Assembly (NCBI GenBank): GCA_020891255.1
Contig: BQFW01000014.1
Location: 1,426,001-1,490,000 of the forward strand
Length of the DNA: 64,000 bases
DNA from: Entomortierella parvispora E1425
Lineage: Eukaryota > Fungi > Mortierellomycota
Direction of reading: 5' to 3'
Shown: one piece after another, positions 1 through 15,533 of the stretch
Numbering within the stretch: position 1 is the stretch's first letter
Layout: each line of letters starts with the position of its first letter
Notes under the pieces: generated by a model
What the model was told of the DNA's origin: nothing
The model's input: the letters and a program-made list of their open reading frames with translations, nothing else
Databases searched by the model: none
Made by a program: the position numbers and the translations under genes

Positions 1-1154
1 GCACCCAATTCATCCAACGGCTATCAGTGAACACGAAAGCTATTTGTCGTCGAATTGCGCTGTAATGTATTGTACGCACAATGCAGTCTGTTTGCCGTCA
101 GATAGAGGTCGGGGAGACACCTTACTTCTCCTTCTCTTTCTTTTTCTCTACCTCTGTGTCCCGGAGTTCTGAGTCAGCTCTTTGTGATCAGACATCTGCA
201 TCGCAACCGCCAGGTTCCCGTCCGTGTGTTCGATGGATCCACTGATATGTGCTGTATACATGCATGCAGTACCCGCCGCCCCAAGACCCAACCATCTTTC
301 TCGATCTTTGTTTTAGCGCCAACCCAGCCGCCCAGTGTCTCTCCAGCCCCTCTGGGTCAATGGAAGGTTCCATGTCTTCTTTCTGACTCGGGAGAGTGTG
401 TCATTTTAGTTGGGTTCCGTTTTGACGTTCTGGGATTGAAATAATTTTTTTGACATTTTTTTTTTTTTAAAAAAAAAATCACCCTGTCAAAAGAAAAGAA
501 CACCAAGACCCGGGCTCGGAAAGAACCCTCATGGCATCGAAGCTGGAGATAAGTGAGCAAGAAGCACATCTCCTCCTGCCTAAACGAGGAGATGAAATGG
601 GGGGAAGAGGTTGGTGCGGTGCTCTAAAGATCAGGCTCACTCTCTTTGTTTGTCGGATAAAGTTTTTTTTTTGACAGGTTGAACCACTTTGACATTCTGC
701 TATTGACAACGGAGGCGTCGGACCTGTGGCAGGGACCCACGCCTTGCATGAGAAGGGGGGGGGGGGGGTATTCCGCAATGGTGTACCTTCAAGATTTTTC
801 TCACTGACCTGTCAAAAAAAAAGTTGACTCTGGACCACCACGAGGTTGTCAAAAAAGTTGATTGTGAGATGAATCCGATCCCTACGTCAGCCTGTACAGT
901 TCTCTCTGTTCATCCGGACATGAAGCTGCGGAAAAAATGAGAAACTACGGATTGTTTTTCCCCCTAGATATTATTATAGATATCTTCACATAAGCCAAAG
1001 AGAAAAGAGAAAACAATAAGATATGAATTTGTTTGGTTTATTGATGAATTTGTTTCTTGGATGGTATATACACAAAGATATGAAGTGATGGTTGAATGTT
1101 TGGTGAGCGCTAGAGAGGGTGATAGGGCTGAAGGAAGCCTAACAGCTTGGCCAT

Positions 1155-2369
1155 TTATCCGCAACCAGCGCAGCCGCTGGATGAACCATTTGAAGCAGCT
1201 CCATTCTTGGATTGGACCATGACCATGTTCCTCTGTCGCGAGAACACGACCGCGCCCACGCAGAGTCCCAAGATCACGGCAAAGAATAACGCCACGTTAA
1301 AGGTCATGGTAACCAACATAAGCGCGTATCCCAACGTGGTCTCCACAAACATCAACACGGATCGGATCAAGTTCTGGCGCACCTCCCGGGCAGACCAAGG
1401 CTGACGCCACAAGTAGACCCAATTCATCAGGATGGAGCTGGAGCCGGAGGGTCCCACGGTCCTGTTCGAGTTCAACGATACTGAAGTCAAAGGTTCCGAC
1501 GGGCCCGTCTTGGCAGTCTCGGCTTCGGCCTCAATCTCAGCAGCCAATTGCTCGGCCCATTGGATATCCAGGCCGGTACGGTAGGCGGCAATGGTCTGAT
1601 AAAACAGTGTCAAAAAGAAGAGCGCGAACCAAGTGCCAGCGTATTGGCCTGCGGATCGAGGCACCCAAGTCTCAAAGAGGACATAATCCTCAAACCCAGT
1701 GTGGAAATACATCCTCATCTTGGGGGGATTCATGTCTGCACCTCCCACGCCAGCAGCACAGTACTCGGACTGATCAAAGCCCATGCTTGAGGCTGATGGG
1801 GTGCACATAGACTTCCAAGTCGAGCATTGGCTCATCTCTGGCATGGCCTTGCAAAGGATTGCATAGGTACCGAGGGTGTCGCATTCGGCTGCATAGGCGT
1901 TGGGGGCGGGCTTGGGGCAGCGCTCGCATCCAGCCATGTCCATCTCTGTGCAGATACCAATCACAAGAGCGGAGGCACTCTTGGTCGTGGGGAACGACGG
2001 GATCATGGGAGCCTTGGTGCAGATGGTAGCAGTAGAGTTGTTAACTCCACATAGTGCGACGTAGTTCTTGCAGCTGCCCATGCCGGGCATGTCCACAGCA
2101 CAAATGTCGGCCAGGATAGAGAAAGGAGTGCACCATTGATCGGTCTTGTGGCTCGACTGGCAGGAATTGAGGAGCGAGCAGCCAGGCATGTACGGCATTT
2201 GTTTGCAAAGGTCTGCCAGGTTCGCTTGGGTTGTGGCTGCTGGAAGCTCAAAGGAGGCACAGCTTGGATCCCATGGGGTCTTGAGGCAGTCCACGGCTGT
2301 CTGAGCAGACACCAGGACCTGAAGGCTCAATGCTCCAAGAGCCAAGAGGATCTTTGGGGCGGAAAGCAT
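1155..2369 (-). CDS. Ctr-family high-affinity copper transporter with a signal peptide and a Cys-Met (CxxMxxMxxC) ectodomain
   Basis: Intronless ORF; likely start MLSAPKILLALGALSLQVLVSA (ATG at 2369). C-terminal Ctr hallmarks: MRMYFHTGFEDYVLF, TM2 MxxxM (MLVTM), TM3 GxxxG (GLCVG). Ectodomain motifs: CKQMPYMPGC, CAVDMPGMGSC, CTEMDMAGC, CKAMPEMSQC. Confidence 0.93.
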   Translation of the reverse strand: MLSAPKILLALGALSLQVLVSAQTAVDCLKTPWDPSCASFELPAATTQANLADLCKQMPYMPGCSLLNSCQSSHKTDQWCTPFSILADICAVDMPGMGSCKNYVALCGVNNSTATICTKAPMIPSFPTTKSASALVIGICTEMDMAGCERCPKPAPNAYAAECDTLGTYAILCKAMPEMSQCSTWKSMCTPSASSMGFDQSEYCAAGVGGADMNPPKMRMYFHTGFEDYVLFETWVPRSAGQYAGTWFALFFLTLFYQTIAAYRTGLDIQWAEQLAAEIEAEAETAKTGPSEPLTSVSLNSNRTVGPSGSSSILMNWVYLWRQPWSAREVRQNLIRSVLMFVETTLGYALMLVTMTFNVALFFAVILGLCVGAVVFSRQRNMVMVQSKNGAASNGSSSGCAGCG

Positions 2370-3388
2370 CGAGGAAGATGGGCAGGGGTAGCGATAAGAA
2401 CAAAGGGTCGTTTGAGGGGAATGGAGAGAAAGGTATAGTTTGTCTTTGATCGAGGCAATTCCAGGGGTGAGGTCGATTTGACAAGTTGGAATAAAACGGA
2501 ACGAGGGAGGTTTATATAGAGTTTTGTGAATGCATGAATGAGAAAGATTGAGAAAAGAGAATGTCAATCGCCGAGAGATGCGCAGACGAGACGAAGCGGT
2601 CTAGGCAAAAGACGGGAAGAATAAGAAGAACAGGAAGAACAGGGAAGAGGAGTTGCAGTTGGATGGGAGAGAGAGAGAGAGGGAGGAAGGGAGGAGGAAA
2701 AACGTTCGACCAGGGACAGACAGCCAAGGCAATTGAGTTCTGCGAGAGTGGCGATGATGCTGGTGCTGGGACAGGAGAGCGACGGAGCGGGATGTCAAAG
2801 ATGGTCTCGCGGAGAGAGAGGCGAGCGATGGAGACCTGTTCCCTATGTCCTTCATGTCCGCCTGTCAAGTTGACAGAAAAAAATAAACAAAAAAGAGTAC
2901 CTTTCGGGGAATGTCAAACCTGTCAGTTTTTTTTCATATTCACCTGGTATTCAGTCTCTGGGATTGAATCGCTCGGCTGTCTTCCCGACCTTCTTTTATC
3001 GTGATAGAATGAGCTTGAGCTCTCGTGCTTGTCCACCTCTGTCCCCTGTTTGTCTGTCTGTGTGCTGCATCCAGTCAGCCCCGCCCACCTCCAGTTGTGA
3101 TGGATGGCCATTGGCGCGCCCTGCCAAAAGAAGAGGTGCCGTTTGACAGGTATGTCCTTGCCGGTACGACCCACCGCCGCCTGTCAGTTCCCAGGCCGCA
3201 ACTGTCCCCGCTGTTGTCACTTGTCGCCGCCGAAGTCAAAGGTTGTCAAAACACAGACTGAGAGAAACCTCGGATCCATACACCGCTGTTTCTATAAAGA
3301 GAGTGGTCTTTCTTCATTGCCCCGCGCCTTTTCTTGTTTTCAATCCTTACCCCTGCTCACTCATCCAACCTCTCTACATACATTCGCC

Positions 3389-4180
3389 ATGCGTTCTTCC
3401 TTGTTTTTGGCTGCTGCTGCTACCTTGTTGGCCTCCTCTGTCTCTGCTCATCCCGGCCATGACGATGCTGCCTCCGTTTGCTTGACCACCCCCACCGACC
3501 CTTCTTGCTCGACCTTCACTTTCCCTAACGCCACCTTGTCTGCTGCCATCGGCGATATCTGCAAGACTTCCTCCTTCCTTCCCGGGTGCTCTCTCAACAC
3601 CGCCTGCGCCGCTGATGCTTCTTTGCCTGCTACTCAGTGCGCTCCCTTGACGATCTTGGCCACTCTTTGCACTGCCACCGACGATACCGCGGTCACGACT
3701 GCCGTCTGCTCAAAGACCTACGGTGTCTTCTGCGCTGCCAACTCTTTGATCCCCTCCTGCAAGACCCAGGTTGCTTTCCCCGGCTTGCCTTCGGGTAAGG
3801 CTGTCGCCGGAGCTGTCTACTCCATCTGTCAGGAGATGGCTGCCATGACCGACTGCAAGATCTGCCCTGCACCCGACGCCACCGGCTACAGCAGCTGTGA
3901 CCAGGTCAAGGCCTGGAAGGGCTTGTGCTTGGACATGCCCGATATGAAGCAGTGCCCCTCTTACAACGACATGTGCAAGGCAACCCCTTTTGCTCCCTTC
4001 TGCACTGCTGCCTATGTTGCCCCCAGTACTCCAACCACATCTAGCGCACCTGCTCCCAGCCCTTCCGGTGACCACTCTGGCCATGGTAGCGGCAACTCTG
4101 CTTCCTCTGCTTCCTCTGTCATGGCCAGCGGAGCCATGACATTGCTGTCTGTCGCCCTTGCTGGTGCCTTGGCTTTGTAA
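3389..4180 (+). CDS. Secreted, probably GPI-anchored Cys/Met-rich protein paralogous to the neighbouring Ctr ectodomain
   Basis: Signal peptide MRSSLFLAAAATLLASSVSA followed by HPGHDD. Cys spacing is collinear with the Ctr ectodomain (CLTTPTDPSC vs CLKTPWDPSC). Carries CQEMAAMTDC and CLDMPDMKQC, a Ser/Thr/Pro stalk and a hydrophobic C-terminal tail (GAMTLLSVALAGALAL). Confidence 0.85.
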   Translation: MRSSLFLAAAATLLASSVSAHPGHDDAASVCLTTPTDPSCSTFTFPNATLSAAIGDICKTSSFLPGCSLNTACAADASLPATQCAPLTILATLCTATDDTAVTTAVCSKTYGVFCAANSLIPSCKTQVAFPGLPSGKAVAGAVYSICQEMAAMTDCKICPAPDATGYSSCDQVKAWKGLCLDMPDMKQCPSYNDMCKATPFAPFCTAAYVAPSTPTTSSAPAPSPSGDHSGHGSGNSASSASSVMASGAMTLLSVALAGALAL

Positions 4181-4326: not shown

Positions 4327-4334
4327 GAATAAGA
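4327..4334. repeat. Left 8-bp target-site duplication GAATAAGA
   Basis: Identical to 9752-9759 and directly abuts the left TIR. Confidence 0.95.
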
Positions 4335-5036
4335 CAGCCTCGACAACTGGGCCACTTTTTCGAAAAAAGTGACCATCCTTCGTTGCACAGAAACGGTGGC
4401 TTCACTCAATTTTTTGGTGGCCACCACTTGGTCGCCACTCAAAATAAAGGAGTGGTGCAAAGGTGTCAACAAACCTGCAGCTCCACTCTTTTTCACTCTT
4501 TTTCACTCTTTTTCACTCTTTTTCACTCTTTTTCACTCTTTTTCACTCTTTTTGAGTGATTCCTGCAGGAAAATGGTGATTTGTCCCAAAAAGGATCGCA
4601 TCCACCAAAAAAAAAAGTGGTCGCCAGTAGTCCCACCAAAAAAAAGTGGACCTCACTTGGGAAAGGAGTGGTCGGAACATTTTGTGCGACCCAAAAGCAG
4701 AGACAAAAAGCGCGTGTGCGGTGCGGTCCAGCGTCTCTCCTCTCGAGCAGCATGCGCATGCCCATACCATGGGCCACACTAGCTTCAAGCGTGCCGTGGT
4801 CTATCTGTTCACGCCTGTTTGTCCACGGATGTTTAATTGCTTGTCTGCCCTTTTTTTTTTTTTTTGTTTCCCGTCTTTTTCCAATCCTGGCCCAAGTCGA
4901 CATTCTCTCCCAGTGAAATCGTATCATGGACGCGCAAGAGCAAGCCCTCCCTCCTCAACAACCCGAGGCTGATCCTGAACTCGTTCCCCAACCTCCACAA
5001 AACTTATGGCACCCACTGGTAGCGGGACTTGAAGAC
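4335..5036 (+). repeat. Left terminal inverted repeat (702 bp)
   Basis: Reverse complement of 9051-9751. The only difference I saw is a 15-T vs 14-A homopolymer. Confidence 0.95.
4484..4553 (+). repeat. (CACTCTTTTT)x7 tandem array inside the left TIR, mirrored at 9533-9602
   Basis: Seven perfect 10-bp units read directly in both TIRs. Confidence 0.95.
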
Positions 5037-5375
5037 CACTTTCAATTGCCAATTGGTGAGCTCCCTCCAGTTCAAGCATGCATCGCTGCAAACAGGCTTG
5101 CCCTCGCCGCAGTTCCTATCAGAGTTGCTAGGAATCAACCGATTGACAACAATTTTTTTGCATTGGAGGACAGGGCCACTGGAGACACTGGTCCTCGCTT
5201 CTCTAAATGTCAAGTTCAGAACTGTCCTTACAGAATTCGCTCTGATTTTGGCTTGAACATTCGACTGCGTCACATCAGGAACACCCACAGAGATTTGATC
5301 GATGCAGTTGTTGCCTTCCGAATCGCTCAAGGTGACCCAGCTTTGGATCAAACACATCTCTTACCTGATCAATAA
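4926..5375 (+). CDS. Transposon ORF-A: small stand-alone BED-like zinc-finger protein (149 aa)
   Basis: KCQVQNCPY...RHIRNTH (C-x4-C...H-x4-H). Similar to the transposase region LKVGQLPP...HVTRNHPEILSALTTFRKNQG. The stop codon overlaps an AATAAA. Confidence 0.7.
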   Translation: MDAQEQALPPQQPEADPELVPQPPQNLWHPLVAGLEDHFQLPIGELPPVQACIAANRLALAAVPIRVARNQPIDNNFFALEDRATGDTGPRFSKCQVQNCPYRIRSDFGLNIRLRHIRNTHRDLIDAVVAFRIAQGDPALDQTHLLPDQ

Positions 5376-5636
5376 ACCATGTGAAGCCCTTCACATTTTT
5401 TCCTCGATGTTTTTGTGGCCATGGTGTGCATGCATGCCCCAGACCAAGAAAATCGCCCAAGCTTATCGCAAGCACTGTGAACCTTCCCGTTTCCTCCATG
5501 CTGTGGGAACTCTTGACTTCTTCCAATGCTCTTGTCTTGAATTTTCCTTTCCTCTTCCTCTTTCCTTTTTTTTCCTCCTTATTTTCTACCTTTTTCTTTT
5601 CTCTATAACATCTATAGTACTACCATTTCTCTCACG

Positions 5637-8600
5637 ATGGACTACGACCCATATAGTCATCATTTCAACGATGATGATGATGCTGTCCAGACAGTACAGA
5701 CCGATCCTCCTCCTCCTCATCCTCCTCCTCACCCTCCTTCCAACATCGAAACTGAGGCTACCCAAGAGCCACAGACTGGTCCACGTCTCCGTCCTTATCC
5801 TCCTTCCAGCATCGATACTGAAGATGTCCAAGAGCCACAGACTGGTCCTCGTCCTCGTCCTCATCCTCCTTCCAACATCGATAATGAGACCATCCAAGCA
5901 CCCCGGACTCATCCTCCTCCTCGCCTTCATCCTCATCCTCATCCTCGTCCTCCTTCCCACACCGATAATGAGGCTGTTCAAGCACCACAGACTCGTCCTC
6001 ATCCCTATCTACCTTCCCACCATCAATATAACCCACTAGTTCCATCCCAACCTCGAGGTCCTCAGTACCCATACTCCCAACCTCATGAGCTTCACCATGC
6101 ATACCATATCCCTGGACAGTATCAATTTCCTCAATATCACTCTCAAGACCCAAATCAACCTGTCTACCACCCACCAGGCCACTTCCATCCATATTCAGAT
6201 GTACCATACAGTCCTTACCCAGGGATGCATCACACCGAATCACACCATACTATGCAGTATTCTACTCTTCCCATTCATCCACAGTATCGCCCTCCTCCCG
6301 GAATGCCCTATGAGCACTACAGAGTACCTCCAACTATTCCAAAGAAACGTCCTGCGGATCAAATCCGTGGTCCAACTCCAGGTGCACCGAGGGCAATTGC
6401 AGATATACACCTTGGGGCTTCGTCCCGAGCCGTATCACCAACTGCCCGAGAGGCTGAAGTTGAGACAACTCCAATGGAACTTTGGAATGCTCGACAAAGG
6501 AATCTGAGTAGAACTTCATCGGTGGCGTCCATTTCACGAGAGCCATCAATGATGTCCGAAGTGGAAATGTACACTCAGGAACAAACGGGCGATAGTACAT
6601 CGTCACCTGTACTCCTTCGGTCAACCCCAGCCTTTTCCGAACCTCCACCAAATGGCGGAGGTATATCCATGACTATAGCAGACTACGAGAAAACACTGAA
6701 AGTGGGCCAGCTCCCACCATATAGTGTGTGCAAGGAGGCCAAGTCTATGCTCGCACATATACCCATAAGGCAGATCGATCTTACGATTCCAGGGGCATGG
6801 CACCGTCATTTCTTTGAGAAGGTGTCAACAACAAATCCTGCCACAATCAACCAGGTTGATCTCCAGCCCACCATCAACGCCCCAACCGTTGATCCATACA
6901 CAGGGAAAAAGTTTCCTTATGTCTCTGACATTCCAAAGGCATGGTTCTTTTGCCGAGTCAAGACTAGTGAGAACCGCAGATGTCACTACCATAAGCCAGG
7001 ATCTCAAGGTACAGGCATGCGTACGGCACATGTTACAAGGAACCATCCAGAAATACTCTCAGCATTGACAACATTCCGAAAAAATCAAGGATTCGAAGGT
7101 AATCTATCTCAATGAATTACTCATAGGTGTACACTATCACATTTTTAACCTATCAAACGTCAATTCATGTAGATGTGGAAGCAGGAAACGCGGAAGGGTA
7201 TTCAGTATTCTATGACCAGACAATGCCAAAGTCCTCGCAGCTGACCAAGATATTGCCGAGTACTCAAGAAGCTATACAGCTATTCACTACTCACAGCGCG
7301 ATTCAACAGAGACTCCCGTTCTCAGTGGTTACTGGCCCGTATGCCTCGGGCGTCGCTAGAATTCTCGGATTTTCATACCCGTCGCCTTCTCCTCAAACCG
7401 TCGGAAAGTGTGTATTCAAGCTTTACGGAAATGCTCGCGCACGACTGGACAAAATATTTGCTGCAGGAGTCGTTCGAGGCTGCTTTACCTACGACGGTTG
7501 GAAGAGATTTGGCCGGAAATTCATCGGGATCACGTTCCATTACATCGAGAAAAAGACCTACAAACCCAAATCTCTGGCGATTGGTTTTGAGGAATACTTT
7601 GGTTCTGGGACGGCTGTTGACATCCAGGATATAGTAGGTAAGTGTGGATGGTAGCTCTGCTTGCCGTCGTCTTTGGCCCTGGCTGCAGCTTGATCTAATA
7701 CAAATCACAACTTCTAGAGCGAACCCTTTTATTTTGGGGGCTAAAAGGCAAGGCCTTTTGCAGTACTACCGACTCCGCCAATGTCATGAAAGCAACAACT
7801 CGACTTTTAATCAACGATGACGAAACTTTTGGTCCGTGGTTTCCCTGTGCCTGTCATAAACTTCAACTGTTTATCCGCAACATCATCGAAGCAACGGGTG
7901 ATATAAAGACTATTGTCCGCAAGGCTGAAGAACACAACAAGGCGTTCCTATCAAGCGGAGGATCAACTCTCCTATGCAAAGCGCGATCCGACTTAAAACA
8001 AAAGGAACTAAAGGCTCTCACATTCACTGTTACGCGATGGAACAGCAGATTCATGATGATAGAGCGCCTTCTGGAGCTACGTGAAGCAACAGACCTGGTC
8101 AAGGCGCGAGCGCAGATGCCTACTGCCACGCAAATGGAGAAGACATTTTGGCGAGAATATGGTAGTCAGCTTCTGAGTAACGAAGAGTTCGATGTTCTCA
8201 AGGAGCTTCTTACTGTCCTGCGACCCACCGCAGAATTGACAGTAGCAATGTCCTCCAACGACCCTGTCATCACAGGCTTATACCCCAAGATCCGCAAGGT
8301 CCTGAGTTCCGACCCTCTGTTGACGATTCCTATTGTGGAGCGGTTCCAAGAAAAAGTTTGTAAGGCAGCTCGCAGGCCTCTTCTCCACAGCTGATATGGC
8401 CGATGAAGTCCTCATTGCCACATACCTCCACCCTACCAATATTAAGAATGATGGATTTTTCACTGGATTGGAAGGAGAAAGACTGAAACAGCTTGCAGAG
8501 GACCTTATTCTTGCAACGGCTGATCCTGAAAGTCCACTGCGCACAGGAATCGACTTTGGGGATAAGTCTACTGAGGATCTCACCACGCTCCTGTCGATGG

Positions 8601-8941
8601 AGCTGCAGAGTTATATCGAACTTGCCCAATCGGAACCGTTGAAAGATTACAACAAACCTCATGAGTGGTGGGCAGTGCATGGAGGCATGTTCAAGTACCT
8701 GTCCCAGTTTGTTGTCATCTTCTTTAGTATACAAGCCTCCTCAGCGGCAAGTGAAAGGCTCTTTAGCGTCTCTGGATGCGTTCTTACAGCAAAAAGAACG
8801 CGTCTTGGTATCCTCAAGCTTAAGGCATTGGTTTTGCTGGCTACCTGGGACACCGGCTACAAGATAAAACTGGACGATTACTATAATGATGGCGATGACG
8901 ATATCGACATATTCCAAAATTTGGATAGCAACATTGGGTGA
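5637..8941 (+). CDS. hAT transposase (exons 5637-7098, 7173-7637, 7718-8941) with an apparent +1 frameshift near 8347
   Basis: Introns 7099-7172 (GTAATC..TAG) and 7638-7717 (GTAAGT..TAG) join three ORFs in frame. BED finger WFFC...C...H-x4-H; catalytic D (TYDGWK), D (TTDSAN), E (ASSAASERLFS); CACH; TRWNS; HEWW/dimerisation domain. The reading frame switches between ORF 7786-8394 and ORF 8333-8941. Confidence 0.88.
5733..6008 (+). repeat. Four degenerate coding repeats (66-bp base unit, PPS(N/S/H)xxxExxQxPxT...) in the transposase N-terminus
   Basis: Units begin at about 5733, 5799, 5865 and 5949 and are visible at both DNA and protein level. Confidence 0.85.
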
Positions 8942-9050
8942 GAGCTCTCAAGATATAAGACTTAGCTGAGTAAACATTAGGAGAAAAATGACGAGAAGTC
9001 CTTCCTTAACATTAGTTGAATATGTACTGCACAGCGATGCATAAAAAATA

Positions 9051-9751
9051 GTCTTCAAGTCCCGCTACCAGTGGGTGCCATAAGTTTTGTGGAGGTTGGG
9101 GAACGAGTTCAGGATCAGCCTCGGGTTGTTGAGGAGGGAGGGCTTGCTCTTGCGCGTCCATGATACGATTTCACTGGGAGAGAATGTCGACTTGGGCCAG
9201 GATTGGAAAAAGACGGGAAACAAAAAAAAAAAAAAGGGCAGACAAGCAATTAAACATCCGTGGACAAACAGGCGTGAACAGATAGACCACGGCACGCTTG
9301 AAGCTAGTGTGGCCCATGGTATGGGCATGCGCATGCTGCTCGAGAGGAGAGACGCTGGACCGCACCGCACACGCGCTTTTTGTCTCTGCTTTTGGGTCGC
9401 ACAAAATGTTCCGACCACTCCTTTCCCAAGTGAGGTCCACTTTTTTTTGGTGGGACTACTGGCGACCACTTTTTTTTTTGGTGGATGCGATCCTTTTTGG
9501 GACAAATCACCATTTTCCTGCAGGAATCACTCAAAAAGAGTGAAAAAGAGTGAAAAAGAGTGAAAAAGAGTGAAAAAGAGTGAAAAAGAGTGAAAAAGAG
9601 TGGAGCTGCAGGTTTGTTGACACCTTTGCACCACTCCTTTATTTTGAGTGGCGACCAAGTGGTGGCCACCAAAAAATTGAGTGAAGCCACCGTTTCTGTG
9701 CAACGAAGGATGGTCACTTTTTTCGAAAAAGTGGCCCAGTTGTCGAGGCTG
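9051..9751 (-). repeat. Right terminal inverted repeat (701 bp)
   Basis: Reverse complement of 4335-5036. Confidence 0.95.
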
Positions 9752-9759
9752 GAATAAGA
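9752..9759. repeat. Right 8-bp target-site duplication GAATAAGA
   Basis: Identical to 4327-4334. Confidence 0.95.
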
Positions 9760-10245
9760 GGACAAAAAATGCACGGGCCAATCGACCCATCCGACTCGTT
9801 GACGGCGAACAGACGAACAACAGGCGAGCAGGCAGAAGCGTGCAGGGTTTCTATATTTCTATATCAACTATTCCAAAGAGGCAGATCCATGACGCACATG
9901 GAGGCCACTGGCATCCTCCCTTTTGGTTTTAGACCGTTTTTTATTCTCTCCCAAGTGCTTTCGAATGACGACAACCCAGGACTTCTTTCCATCCAGGCTT
10001 TGACCTCTTCCAGCTAAACCAGCAATATAAAGGAGGCGACAGAGAAAGATGAACACAACATCTTTTCATTGCTTTGCATGCGTTTTTTTAGTCCCTGATT
10101 CTCCACACGACTCTAAAACACGTTTTGAGTATATTTTTTATTTTCTTCCATCTTCGTTTCTCTTCTTTCCCTTTCATCCTACTATCCCCCATAAACCATC
10201 CACACTACTTAACGACTTTTCGTTCTTCACATTGAAAAGATAAAT

Positions 10246-12297
10246 ATGAATCAAACTCAGGCGGCTCTTCATGCTTTGCCGAGCGATCTGGTCACCAAGT
10301 TATGTCGATCCAAAGTGACCAGGCTCTCTGTATGTTTATATTTTTTCTTCATCCTACGTTCATCCCATCACTAGATCTCTGACTTTCATCCATTATTGAT
10401 TGTGTTTTTGTGTTTTGTATCATCTTCACTCATTGACGTTTCCCCCTGCTAGCTCAAACAAATGTACACCCTGGGAAGACATGTACTTGAATCCAAGAAT
10501 CAAGGCGCGTTCGTGATCCCAGCTGTTTTCTTACATCAAGAGCTTCCGATTCGCATGTCACATGCACTTTCCATGCTCAACAACTCCTCAAACCTGCTGC
10601 CACTCAGCGTGGTGGAGATGCCCACCTTTCAAAAGATTGCTCGATCCTACTTGGAAGATATTAGGTACTAAAGTGGTGCTTAGCACGAAAAGGTGGCGAG
10701 GGAGGAAGAAAGTTGTTTGCACAGGGAAGGGCAAGGGAATGTAACGAGATCATCATCCAAATCTCTCAAGGCCAAAAAGAAAATACCTCTAACCTCTGAC
10801 CTCTTTTGTCTTTTCTTTTGCTCTTCCAATGGAAGTCTTATGACGCAAATTCCTAAGCCGTCGACACCTCAGCTGGAAGAGCAGTTCACTGCGTTGCTTT
10901 TTGATCTGGAGCAACGCCATGCGCTCAAAATGCTGACTATTGATCAAGGCGTCAGGGAACTAGTAGTGGCGTTGCAGGGTCATCGAGACAATCAGGCGAA
11001 TGACGCGTGCTCCATGAGGAGATGTAGCGTCGGTGAGAGCAGTAACAACTCTTACAACTGCAACCCTTGCCCTGAAGATGCTGCCGCTATCCAGTCCTTC
11101 TTCAACCGATTCTACACTATCAACCTTGGCACTCGTCTTTTGATAGGTAGGTCAAGTGGAATCAACGGTTAAGGAGATGACCTGATTAAATTTGTCCAGT
11201 TCTTCTGCTGACGCGTTTTTTTTTTTTTTTTTTTATGATCCCATGTACTAGGTGAACATCTCGCCCTTAAATACTCGAATGAAAATCTGGTCAAACGGTT
11301 GAACCCTCTCAAGATCTCTCAAAATGCCATAAGGGAGGCTCAGGACGGGTTTGTTGCACATTGTCACCAACAGTTTTCTACGGCACTAGCAGCAACCCGT
11401 CCGGTCATCGCTATCCCCACAGTTGAGATTCTGACATCATGTCCATCTTCGAACGAAATGTCAGCAACGTACGTGGAAGAGTTTTTACGTAGGAATATTG
11501 TTGAACTTCTCAAGAACGCCATGCATGCCACTTGTGAGACCCATCAGTCGAGACTGGAGGGTGATCCCTGGACCCTTGCCATGGGTACCCCTTCAACATC
11601 GTCAGCGAAGAGATCAGCGTTGCCTCCCATCCGACTAACCTTGGTGCACGGTGAAGAGGACGTGTCCATCAAGATCACGGACGAAGGTGGTGGATTTGCG
11701 CTTTCGGAGCTAGATCGGATCTGGAGCTTTGCACACGCCTCTCTAACGTCGTCGTCCTTGTCAGCCATGACAACCAAGCCCAGTTCAAAAACCCTTCTCT
11801 TTTCCCCTCCCGCTCCTTTCAAAATCTCAATGGGCTGCGGTCTACCACTGGCCCGTTTAATTGCTCGGTATTTTGGCGGAGATCTGACGGTGGTTCCTTT
11901 GGATGGACACGGCACCGATTCGTATCTCTCTCTTTACAGGAACGATGATCACCTTGAGAACTTCCCAGAACTCGAGACCGAGATGTTGGATGAGGTTGAT
12001 GTGCTTGTAGACGACCTCTTGGACAGATCGATGACCCTTGATTCTTCCTTGGTGACGGACTCTTCAATGGGCAGTCTCTCTCTGGACCCTTTAATGGCTG
12101 ATTCTTCTGTATCCATACCAGAAGCAGAGGCTCCATCCCCACCTCCTTCATTGCCAACGAGTATGCTCCTTGGCTTAGGCAAAACTTCCCCAAGGAATAG
12201 TGACGGTGCGACAACCAAACTGCTTCTGCCCAGAGTGGAATCATTCCTTCCACCACCCTCACCCTCTCTTTCTGAGCCCAACTCGCCGGCCTTGTAG
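10246..12297 (+). CDS. Mitochondrial alpha-ketoacid dehydrogenase kinase (PDK/BCKDK family), multi-exon
   Basis: FLHQELPIRMSH (N-domain), N-box ELLKNAM, G1 DEGGG, GLPLARLIARYFGGDL. Exon boundaries and start (MNQTQAAL) are inferred. Confidence 0.85.
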
Positions 12298-12862
12298 ACT
12301 AATAAAAACTATAAAAAGGTCTTATACTTGTACATATGTACCTTTGGCGGCGAGTAGACTACCAGGCACAGAATTTCTATAGTTAGGTCGGGACGCGCCA
12401 AAACTTTCATTGGCCAGGGATCGGCCGTCGCAAAAGTTCTTGGAAGGTAGCAAAACAGCATGGTAGAGCTACGAGCACTATCGCCGGGCGGGTTCAAGGA
12501 CCTTGAAGAGCTGGACATGACAAGAACTGGCAGCTGCAATAAGGTCTGCATCTGGGCCTGAGCATGTGGCAAGACCTTGACGCGTCTTGAGTTAACCATT
12601 GAAACTCGCGTCCTAGAGTTTTGAACAACAACATTCTGGTTTCTCGAGGAGAATCTCTTTTCTTCAAGGCAAGAGACCTTATTGTCATCTCTCCTTTAAA
12701 AACTGTAAGAGGTTCATATTGGTTCATATTTACTACCACTGAAACCCTCAATGTCGGTTGCTTAGGGACTTCATGGCCAACCTCAGTAGATCCCTCAAAC
12801 ATCCACCCGAGAGCCATTATCTCATGAGTTTACCCCACTCAGCACATCGACATGGAACATAA

Positions 12863-12874
<12 letters not shown>

Positions 12875-12910
<36 letters not shown>
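12875..12910. repeat. (AC)n microsatellite, about 18 units
   Basis: Read directly. Confidence 0.95.
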
Positions 12911-12913
<3 letters not shown>

Positions 12914-13654
12914 GGGAAACGATACATGGCAAAATTGCAAGAGTTGTATTAGTGCTCTTTTCTCTTCTATCTCTCACGACTGCGGCAAAAAAAAGAGGGT
13001 CGATTTTGAATAGCCAGAGGTGAGGCTCAAGGGAGAAAAGGAGAAGGGCTATGGAGGAGATGAAAATATGAGCTGCAATGTTGTTGGAGATGCCAATAAA
13101 AAGAGAAAAAAAAAAGAAAAAAGAAAAAGAAAAAAAAGAGAAAAAAAAAACAAAAAAAGAGTTGTCAGAAAAACGACAAGCAGGTAGGTAGAAAGGTAAG
13201 ATAAAAGAACAGGGATTGATAAAGAATTACTACATTACAAGGGGGAAGAGGCAAATAAAAAAAGGTACTCCTAGCAATATAGAGCTGGAGATAATTGAGA
13301 CGTAAATAGGACGGCTGGGAAACCGTCCGGCCCGCGTTGGTCGCTCTTCACTTGTCTGCACGCGCTTCCTGTGCAGAGAAGGAGAGCGAGCGGAAGAGAG
13401 GAGAGAGGGGGATGAAGAGTATTATTTTCGAGGTGGTCGGTTCAATGAATTTGGTCCGGCAGTCGGTGTGTGTGAGTGAGTGAGTGCGAATATGTGAGTG
13501 GTGTGTGTGTGTGAGCGTGAATGTCCTCCTTTTCTCCTCACATTTCGAAAAAGGAGTCTCCATTTCATCCTTGCTGCTCTAATGAAACATAGTCCAGCCA
13601 GGTATTGGAGTAGATAGGGTGACAAGGCATATATCCACTCCACAGAGCGAGCAA

Positions 13655-15533
13655 TTACAGAATGCCACTATCTTTGAGGGCGTTCTGTAGGATTGTTTCC
13701 TTAACGGCGGCAAAGACCAATCTATGGAGAATAAATGTGACAGGGGTCAGACAGAATTCTCTCTAGTTGCACCATAATTTTACTCCCATGAGGGTCAGGA
13801 TGAAACGTGTCAACTTACCGAATCTATGGAATGTGATCAAAAGACGCGCAGAATCATGAAACAGGCACAGCAGTGAAACGCTGACAGTTAGTAACTTGCG
13901 GGAAGATGTGGGTGGCTCCATGAAAGATTTCCATTGTTCATGTATCAATTAACCTACATTCAGAGTATCGGTCGCCTGCGTCATGCTGTTGGCGAAAGGA
14001 AAAGAAAAGTTGAAATAGGTTAATGATATCATCTTGGGAGCTCAGTGCATGCACTGCGCAAGGAAATGACACTGTGACATCCACACTTACTGAGGGTATA
14101 TGTGAAGTCGTGCTCGGTTGGTTTGAGTGAAACGCCAGAGGATGTACTTTGCAGCCTTGGTGATATCAGGGCCACCTGGTAAAGTTCAAAAGGGGGGATT
14201 AGATACTGTGCAGGAACTATGAAGGCTCAGATCATTGTCCTGAGCACACACCTGTGTAGTCCGAAAAGTACTTCTCCAAAGGTACTTTTGGAAGTTTGGC
14301 AGCAAACAGATCAATTTTGTTCATAAACAGGATAATGGAGGTCCTGAGGAACCATCGACTGTTGATTACGGATTCAAAGAGAACCAAACTTTCGGCCATA
14401 CGATTCTAGAGAAATGAATATGACGCAACATGATTAGGCAAAGGATATACCTCTAGGAAACAAGTGTGTTCGGTTGGAGGACACTCTTACCTGTCCAGAC
14501 TCTTCCAAAAGAACTTGATCATATTCACTCAAAGCCACACAAAAGATGATAGAGGTGACAGCCTCAAAACAATGGATCCATTTTTTCCGCTCTGAGCGCT
14601 GTCCACCGACGTCAAACATGCTAAAAGATCAAAGAGGAGAAAGTGCAATTAGAATCAGCGGTAGTTAATAACGTTCACAGGCAGACGGGCATTGGAGATG
14701 CGACGGGACGTTACTGTATACTAAGCTGGCCCATGTTGAATCGTGTTTCCGATATGCCCGTAGTTTTTGAACGAGCACGCAGTACATCTTGCACGACAGG
14801 AGTGTAGTCCTCTGCACCCAGCCGTCGGACCTGACTGAAGAAGCTGTTGAAGGACAGGATAGCAAGAAGAGCATATGTGAGTCGCGGTCGTGACTGGAAC
14901 ACGATGAAAAAAAAGTACAGTCACGAATACAAGAACAGAGAAAAAAAGGCGAAAAATACTCACTATGGCGCAGAGTCCATGATATAGAACTCACTGGACC
15001 GCTCCATCGTCTTGGCACTGCTGGGATCCTTGTAAAGGCTGTCAATAGCATTGACAATGTCGGCGCTCAGCGTAAAGTACGGATCTGCATCCACGCGATA
15101 GTCGAGGATACGATCAGCGTTGGCTTTATTCTCCGGCAAGGCCGGCTCCAGGCGCAATTTTTCCATAGCCAGCACCAACGACTGTGCAGAGTCGATGAGG
15201 TTCTTGTAAATGGTGAGCTTGTAGGTGGCCAGCTCTTCTGGACTATATCCTCCTTGATGAATCACCTTCATTTGCTTTACAATGGTCGATTTGCCAGATT
15301 CTCCACTCCCTAAAGGTCACGTCAAACAAGGGCGGGGACACGTTCAGCAGGCAAACATACAAAACGGATGAAGGGGCTAAATTGGCCGTCGACTGGAACA
15401 GGCGTAGTACTCTACCTAGAAGGAGGATTTTGCACTCTTTCTTGAGGCGTCGGTTATCTTCTTCCAGCCCTCGGTCAATGTTCTGGCTGATCTCCTTCTG
15501 CTCCTTTTCCTCGGCAGAAAGACACAGACCCAT
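13655..15533 (-). CDS. Heterotrimeric G-protein alpha subunit, group III (cAMP-pathway type), multi-exon
   Basis: MGLCLS N-terminus (myristoylation/palmitoylation), [33 protein letters not shown], and C-terminus [21 protein letters not shown]. Confidence 0.95.

Follow-up and report, generated by a model that had tools for sequence, protein, structure and literature searches.

A hAT transposon family with ~700-bp matched arms and two same-strand genes in the fungus Entomortierella parvispora

Introduction

Canonical hAT transposons have terminal inverted repeats (TIRs) of ~10–30 bp and two asymmetric ends, and in two other superfamilies, PIF/Harbinger and En/Spm, a DNA-binding protein with its own gene next to that of the transposase (the Myb-like ORF1 and TnpA, respectively) acts on the element ends. 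In the hAT element Hermes, BED domains bind subterminal repeats at the left end (LE) only, and symmetrised LE/LE elements are nearly inactive, end asymmetry being named an important requirement (PMC10368747). The long TIRs of Mutator-like elements (MULEs) carry transposase-binding sites and promoters (PMC3310237), and those of Galileo contain multiple binding sites for the DNA-binding domain of its transposase (PMC3688188). Here we analyzed a 64-kb stretch of the genome of the soil fungus Entomortierella parvispora E1425 (GCA_020891255.1, contig BQFW01000014.1, positions 1,426,001 to 1,490,000; hereafter the window, to which coordinates refer unless another locus is named) and describe a transposable element at 4335–9751, referred to as copy W. 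The element is a hAT whose arms, long as in MULEs, contain a gene upstream region and evolve concertedly; it also encodes an old accessory protein paralogous to the DNA-binding region of its transposase. The design is unusual but not unprecedented for a DNA transposon. We assign a probability of about 0.8 to the reading that it belongs to a young hAT family of E. parvispora E1425 with two same-strand genes and ~700-bp matched arms, to which roles in protein binding and silencing can be ascribed by inference.

With the canonical hATs (Ac, hobo, Hermes, Tol2 and the fungal Restless), the element shares the 8-bp target-site duplication (TSD), the CAG-type tips, the C-terminal dimerisation domain, the catalytic blocks, an N-terminal zinc finger and short repeats in the subterminal few hundred bp. 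It differs from them in a second gene and in ends that are identical for ~700 bp, in place of the short, asymmetric ends that are typical of hATs without defining them. Whereas Hermes needs unlike ends, full symmetry of the ends has not prevented mobility in the E. parvispora family. Long TIRs and two genes are also found in MuDR and the MULEs, whose convergent gene layout recurs in one relative of our element alone (L011, see below). However, MULEs have TSDs of 9–10 bp and an unrelated transposase, whereas the genes of the E. parvispora family point in the same direction and its right arm carries a gene stump only. Galileo (P superfamily) and foldback-like elements are comparable as members of short-TIR superfamilies that evolved very long TIRs, but Galileo belongs to another superfamily, has a THAP rather than a C2H2 finger and another TSD length, and has no accessory gene starting in the TIR. 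Unlike the DNA-binding proteins of PIF/Harbinger and En/Spm, which are unrelated superfamilies, ORF-A, the second gene product described here, is paralogous to the DNA-binding region of the transposase itself. Full-text literature searches, which did not cover Repbase or Dfam, found no description of a long-TIR hAT; likewise, no description was found of a free DNA-binding subunit or regulator for a hAT, although such proteins are known in other superfamilies.

Results

Boundaries and arms of the element

Copy W is 5,417 bp long and has CAG...CTG tips, reading CAGCCTCG... at the left and ...CGAGGCTG at the right. It is flanked by an 8-bp TSD, GAATAAGA, whose left copy at 4327–4334 is matched exactly by the right copy at 9752–9759, and the empty site is expected to read ...CTGAATAAGAGGAC.... 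The left TIR (4335–5036, + strand, tip CAGCCTCGACAACTGGG) comprises 702 nt and the right TIR (9051–9751, − strand) 701 nt. A repeat search and pairwise alignment found no substitution between these two arms, a single T, in a homopolymer run (T15/T14) at ~4851, being the sole difference. The 21-nt terminus occurs only at the two element ends within the window, with a chance expectation of 0.01. A preliminary description, made by reading the DNA, had noted an exact 8-bp TSD with CAG/CTG ends, TIRs of 702/701 bp that differ by one homopolymer base, and two genes; the exact alignment of the arms and the positions of ORF-A (4926–5375) and of the transposase start (5637) bear this out.

Each arm begins at the tip with short subterminal repeats and a 10-bp array that varies in unit number, continues with the ORF-A upstream region and ends with the first 37 ORF-A codons. 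In the left arm, the zone of subterminal repeats (4335–4670) contains AAAAAGTG/CACTTTTT at 4353, 4364, 4612 and 4641 as well as GTGG/CCAC motifs. The AAAAAGTG/CACTTTTT motifs occupy the outer ~330 bp of the arm, and eight of the ten AAAAAGTG 8-mers in the window fall inside the two arms, while the GTGG/CCACC motifs are conserved in L004, which with L003 represents a relative from soil metagenomes. The 10-bp tandem array, seven units of CACTCTTTTT at 4484–4553 (+), is mirrored by a seven-unit array at 9533–9602 (−) in the right arm. Directly upstream of the ORF-A start codon lies a putative promoter and 5' untranslated region (4671–4925, +), part of which is conserved in L003/L004; a sigma-70 promoter scan, a model irrelevant to a fungus, found nothing. 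Because each arm includes the first 37 codons of ORF-A, the right arm holds a truncated antisense version of it (ORF-A', 9012–9161, −), in which these codons are followed by 12 unrelated ones, and this 49-codon stump is directed toward the transposase stop, 110 bp away.

Two further observations concern the inner arm boundaries. The sequence just inside the right arm shares 11 nt, ATGCATCGCTG, with a part of ORF-A that lies 40 nt inside the left arm. A right arm derived from an eroded full ORF-A was considered on this account and rejected, as the match was not significant against shuffled sequences. At 5038–5056, immediately internal to the left arm, a 19-nt sequence with two CAATTG palindromes, ACTTTCAATTGCCAATTGG, is identical in L003 (365–383) and L004 (~564–582) despite this being a 51%-diverged relative, and the adjacent codons are rich in synonymous changes. 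This identity may reflect a constraint at the DNA level.

The transposase gene and its hAT identity

The transposase gene is on the + strand and is modeled with three exons, giving a protein of ~1,050 aa. Exon 1 (5637–7098), to whose first position the annotated start of EMPS_10542 maps, encodes a Pro-rich region with 66-nt coding repeats (5714–6018) and then a finger region. Exon 2 (7173–7637) encodes the first catalytic-block motif, FTYDGW, and exon 3 (7718–8941) encodes TTDSANVMKA, CACHKLQL and the SERLFS-containing hAT dimerisation domain. The model was derived from reading frames and splice sites, which predict intron 1 at 7099–7172 (74 nt, GT..AG) and intron 2 at 7638–7717 (80 nt, GTAAGT..AG). 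The annotated transposase of the window is EMPS_10418 (P0006), and its 867-aa product fits the three-exon model.

The dimerisation domain Dimer_Tnp_hAT (PF05699) was detected by Pfam in the C-terminal open reading frame with an E value of 3.6e-13 and 49.5 bits against a cutoff of 21.4, and it was also detected in P0010 and P0158. The four motifs above were read in the exons and align with those of the relative L011; compared with the conserved blocks of the hAT RNase H-like DDE fold (D..W, tDnasN, C.H.L.L and S.ER.FS), they were judged to agree. Pfam gave no score for the catalytic core of the transposase, and a phmmer search of the PDB returned no solved structure that matches it by sequence. 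An exhaustive HMMER search of 1.84 billion representative sequences yielded 383 hAT-like matches at E ≤ 1e-3 and 22 at 1e-10, and some of the relatives bear ZBED1_RNase-like and Dimer_Tnp_hAT domains. The nearest protein outside the E. parvispora E1425 genome in this search is 40% identical, and word-indexed protein searches returned only the copies of this genome plus P0002 and P0093. By its 8-bp TSDs, CAG/CTG tips, dimerisation domain and motifs aligned with relatives, the element is therefore a hAT, as the preliminary description had proposed, and its few close relatives place it in a poorly sampled branch.

The 66-nt coding repeats at the transposase N-terminus form three to four tandem Pro-rich units of 22 aa each, and the 30 N-terminal residues of ORF-A, which are encoded by the arm, weakly resemble one such unit.

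ORF-A, a second gene related to the transposase finger region

ORF-A (4926–5375, +) encodes 149 aa, with its first 37 codons lying within the left arm, and is followed by a CT-rich spacer of 261 bp (5376–5636, +) that leads to the transposase gene, a layout also present in L003. The protein is 99% identical to EMPS_10543 of E. parvispora; it is one residue off the annotated copies, and an exact-protein look-up gave no match. ORF-A aligns with residues 354–485 of the transposase, that is, with its N-terminal C2H2 finger region, and C95, C100, H116 and H121, as well as C52, are invariant in a six-sequence alignment. In reciprocal tblastn searches, ORF-A of copy W matched the ORF-A homologue of L011 at 40% identity (7e-21), compared with ~26% for either transposase N-terminus, while the transposase N-termini of W and L011 paired with each other (36%, 1e-21). 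Since ORF-A pairs with ORF-A and N-terminus with N-terminus, the duplication is older than the split of the two lineages. By these protein comparisons, ORF-A is a free-standing, conserved paralogue of the N-terminal C2H2 finger region of the transposase that arose long ago.

The ratio of nonsynonymous to synonymous substitution rates (dN/dS) of ORF-A between W and L003 is 0.37. The soil-metagenome relative L003/L004 has 51% ORF-A identity and keeps the stop codon, the spacer and the transposase start ATGGACTACGAC, and two RNA-informed AUGUSTUS gene calls treat ORF-A as a gene of its own. The AlphaFold model of ORF-A has a predicted local distance difference test (pLDDT) score of 72.8. An Atlas search with ORF-A pointed to zf-BED clusters below the reliability marks, and Pfam gave a weak, sub-threshold match to DBD_Tnp_Mut (E 0.095, 12.8 bits versus a cutoff of 25). 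An alignment search of metagenome contigs with ORF-A gave no confirmed match, and a 17-nt degenerate DNA pattern gave 120 chance matches, none of them related by blastn.

Relatives with and without ORF-A and long arms

The closest relative, L011 (Logan run SRR33769964), has a ~40% identical transposase at 285–3036 (+) and a 190-aa ORF-A homologue (hhalign 98.9%) downstream at 3205–3777 (−), so that the two genes are convergent. Because the L011 homologue of ORF-A is encoded downstream of the transposase on the other strand, it is not a transposase exon. No inverted repeats were found in L011. The locus L133 (metagenome contig ERZ27256794, 1608–5142) is a complete 3.5-kb hAT with ~33% core identity, CAG...CTG tips and a perfect 8-mer TSD, CTCTTCAC, and it has no ORF-A. 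Its arms are 230 nt long, 98% identical and made of GCACAAACCTCA-like subrepeats; long arms therefore recur in this hAT branch.

A more distant protein is encoded in the locus L010 (6001–9121) by EMPS_10302, a 956-aa hAT-related product with 28% identity and a weak Dimer_Tnp_hAT match. No inverted repeats of at least 30 nt were found in its 3-kb upstream and ~3.9-kb downstream flanks. EMPS_10302 may be an old or domesticated copy.

Six copies and concerted evolution of their arms

Exact-protein look-ups, together with the loci represented in the transposase cluster, gave five further copies of the same structure from contigs 7, 8, 10 and 14 of the E1425 assembly, all with different flanks, so that the family has at least six copies. 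The five other copies are >99.6% identical and have arms of 680–682 bp, giving a range of 680–702 nt for all six, and the same termini and the same inner arm boundary are found in every copy. Besides W, perfect 8-bp TSDs flank the copies L002 (GATTGGAG) and L007 (GAAAAAAA), while the TSD of L001 is ambiguous within TTTTTA-rich flanking DNA. The six distinct insertion sites show recent mobility, and the family moves by cut-and-paste with 8-bp target duplications.

The flanks of the two remaining copies read AGTAAAAC+GG versus AGTAAAAG in L008 (4709–4720 / 10097–10108) and CATTGTTT versus CATGATTGTTT in L009 (4711–4722 / 10099–10110).

Between copies, we counted 2–8 substitutions per 5.4 kb. Within copies, the arm pairs show no substitution in any of the six and differ only in the T run (13–15 nt), whose length is unreliable in a Nanopore assembly. 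Three arm variants distinguish the copies reliably. First, the 10-bp array has seven units in W and five in the other copies, a 20-bp expansion that is present in both arms of W. Second, A10 versus A9 at 4607 sets L002 and L007 apart, again in both arms. Third, the same two copies carry C>A at 4949 together with G>T at 9138. All three variants are thus mirrored in the other arm of exactly the same copies, and one arm must therefore have been copied onto the other after the copies diverged. This pattern indicates that the arms evolve in concert, and gene conversion between the inverted repeats would be the simplest mechanism for matching them. The preliminary description had offered a recent insertion or TIR homogenisation as the cause of the arm identity; the few substitutions among the six copies support the one and the mirrored variants the other.

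Reading frames of the transposase copies

Comparison with the homologous L011 gene identifies T4 at 7805–7808 and A4 at 8351–8355 as the states that keep the frame. Copy W has T4 and A5, the A5 breaking the frame of exon 3, and L009 has T5 and A5. The copies L001, L002, L007 and L008 have T5 and A4, and L001 contains two more single-base insertions. The E1425 assembly was built from Nanopore reads and polished with Nanopolish and Pilon (PMC8759367). All these differences concern the length of homopolymers, in a Nanopore-based assembly and within a repeat present in several copies, and they may be errors.

Discussion

A proposed mechanism and the evidence against it

By analogy with the BED domains of Hermes, the finger regions of the transposase and of ORF-A would bind the subterminal repeats in the arms. 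ORF-A could then be a regulator that competes for the subterminal sites or a helper that loads them. Gene conversion between the arms would keep them identical and thereby symmetric, and the putative ORF-A promoter, being duplicated in the right arm, could drive an antisense RNA over the 3' end of the transposase gene. A read-through transcript might fold into a 700-bp hairpin, and the antisense RNA and the hairpin together could feed RNA silencing. A bolder version, in which the element is a two-component hAT that dispenses with the end asymmetry needed by Hermes-type transpososomes, with two identical 700-bp ends, an obligatory ORF-A subunit, arm conversion and the antisense promoter as a self-limiter, appears doubtful to us, and we put it forward only tentatively.

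Several results speak against the reading of a young, two-gene hAT family with binding and silencing roles. As assembled, none of the six copies has an open transposase frame, which may reflect assembly errors or a defect in every copy. Among the six TSDs, those of L008 and L009 are imperfect, being offset by 3 nt. Concerted evolution is supported by just three independent mirrored variants. With regard to the binding role, Pfam found no zf-BED match in ORF-A or in the transposase N-terminus, and a Foldseek structure search with the ORF-A model returned nothing significant, the Ac transposase N-terminus and ZBED39 appearing at E ~1–2. The promoter, the introns and the antisense transcript are predictions from the assembled sequence, which is also the source of the homopolymer lengths.

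Alternative explanations

The preliminary description had named an assembly artefact as one outcome that would overturn it, and the long inverted repeat might indeed be such an artefact or a private rearrangement of copy W, given that the assembly is Nanopore-built and long palindromes are hard to assemble. This is contradicted by the six copies, which have unlike flanks and TSDs at their different loci yet share the same arms and the same inner boundary, and we regard an artefact as exceedingly improbable. There is next to no probability, either, that the element is a Mutator-like or foldback element instead of a hAT. Such an origin would agree with long arms that hold a gene upstream region, with the sub-threshold DBD_Tnp_Mut match in ORF-A and with the convergent gene pair of L011. 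However, the TSDs are 8 bp rather than 9–10 bp, Pfam found Dimer_Tnp_hAT and no MULE transposase domain, and the relatives carry hAT and ZBED1 RNase-like domains. The MULE-like architecture ascribed to the element earlier therefore applies in part: the long arms contain the upstream region and start of a gene, as in that comparison, but both genes are on the same strand, and they are convergent in L011 only.

It is also quite unlikely that there is only one gene, with ORF-A being an initial transposase exon or a relic in decay that has no function. Although the two reading frames are on the same strand, only 261 bp apart, and a weak GT site lies near 5332, the in-frame stop and the CT-rich spacer between them are conserved in L003 at 51% protein identity, and in L011 the ORF-A homologue follows the transposase on the other strand. 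The two separate calls by AUGUSTUS and the dN/dS of 0.37 are likewise at odds with an exon or a relic. Finally, arm identity might stem from a very recent inverted duplication rather than from continuing homogenisation. The copies are so young that few arm differences would be expected in any case, but the expanded array, the homopolymer variant and the substitution are each present in both arms, which needs arm-to-arm copying after the copies diverged; we consider a duplication alone unlikely. A young hAT family with concerted arms and a separate ORF-A gene thus remains our preferred reading.

Significance

With its perfectly symmetric 700-bp ends, this naturally mobile hAT is a counter-example to Hermes, the best-studied hAT transposase, and would allow end discrimination by hAT transpososomes to be tested. 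ORF-A is a candidate regulator or second subunit for a hAT, and the mirrored variants provide a clean, small case of concerted evolution within a transposon. In addition, the family could serve as a genetic tool for Mortierellaceae.

Neighboring genes of other copies

Two of the other copies have further mobile-element-like genes in their vicinity. In L008, a called gene at 11581–14185, ~1.5 kb from the copy, encodes 1,283 aa with a weak Pfam match to Cas12f1-like_TNB (TnpB/Fanzor-type). In L001, a retrotransposon pol gene with RVT_1, RNase H and integrase domains occupies 1–1904, 7.5 kb upstream of the copy.

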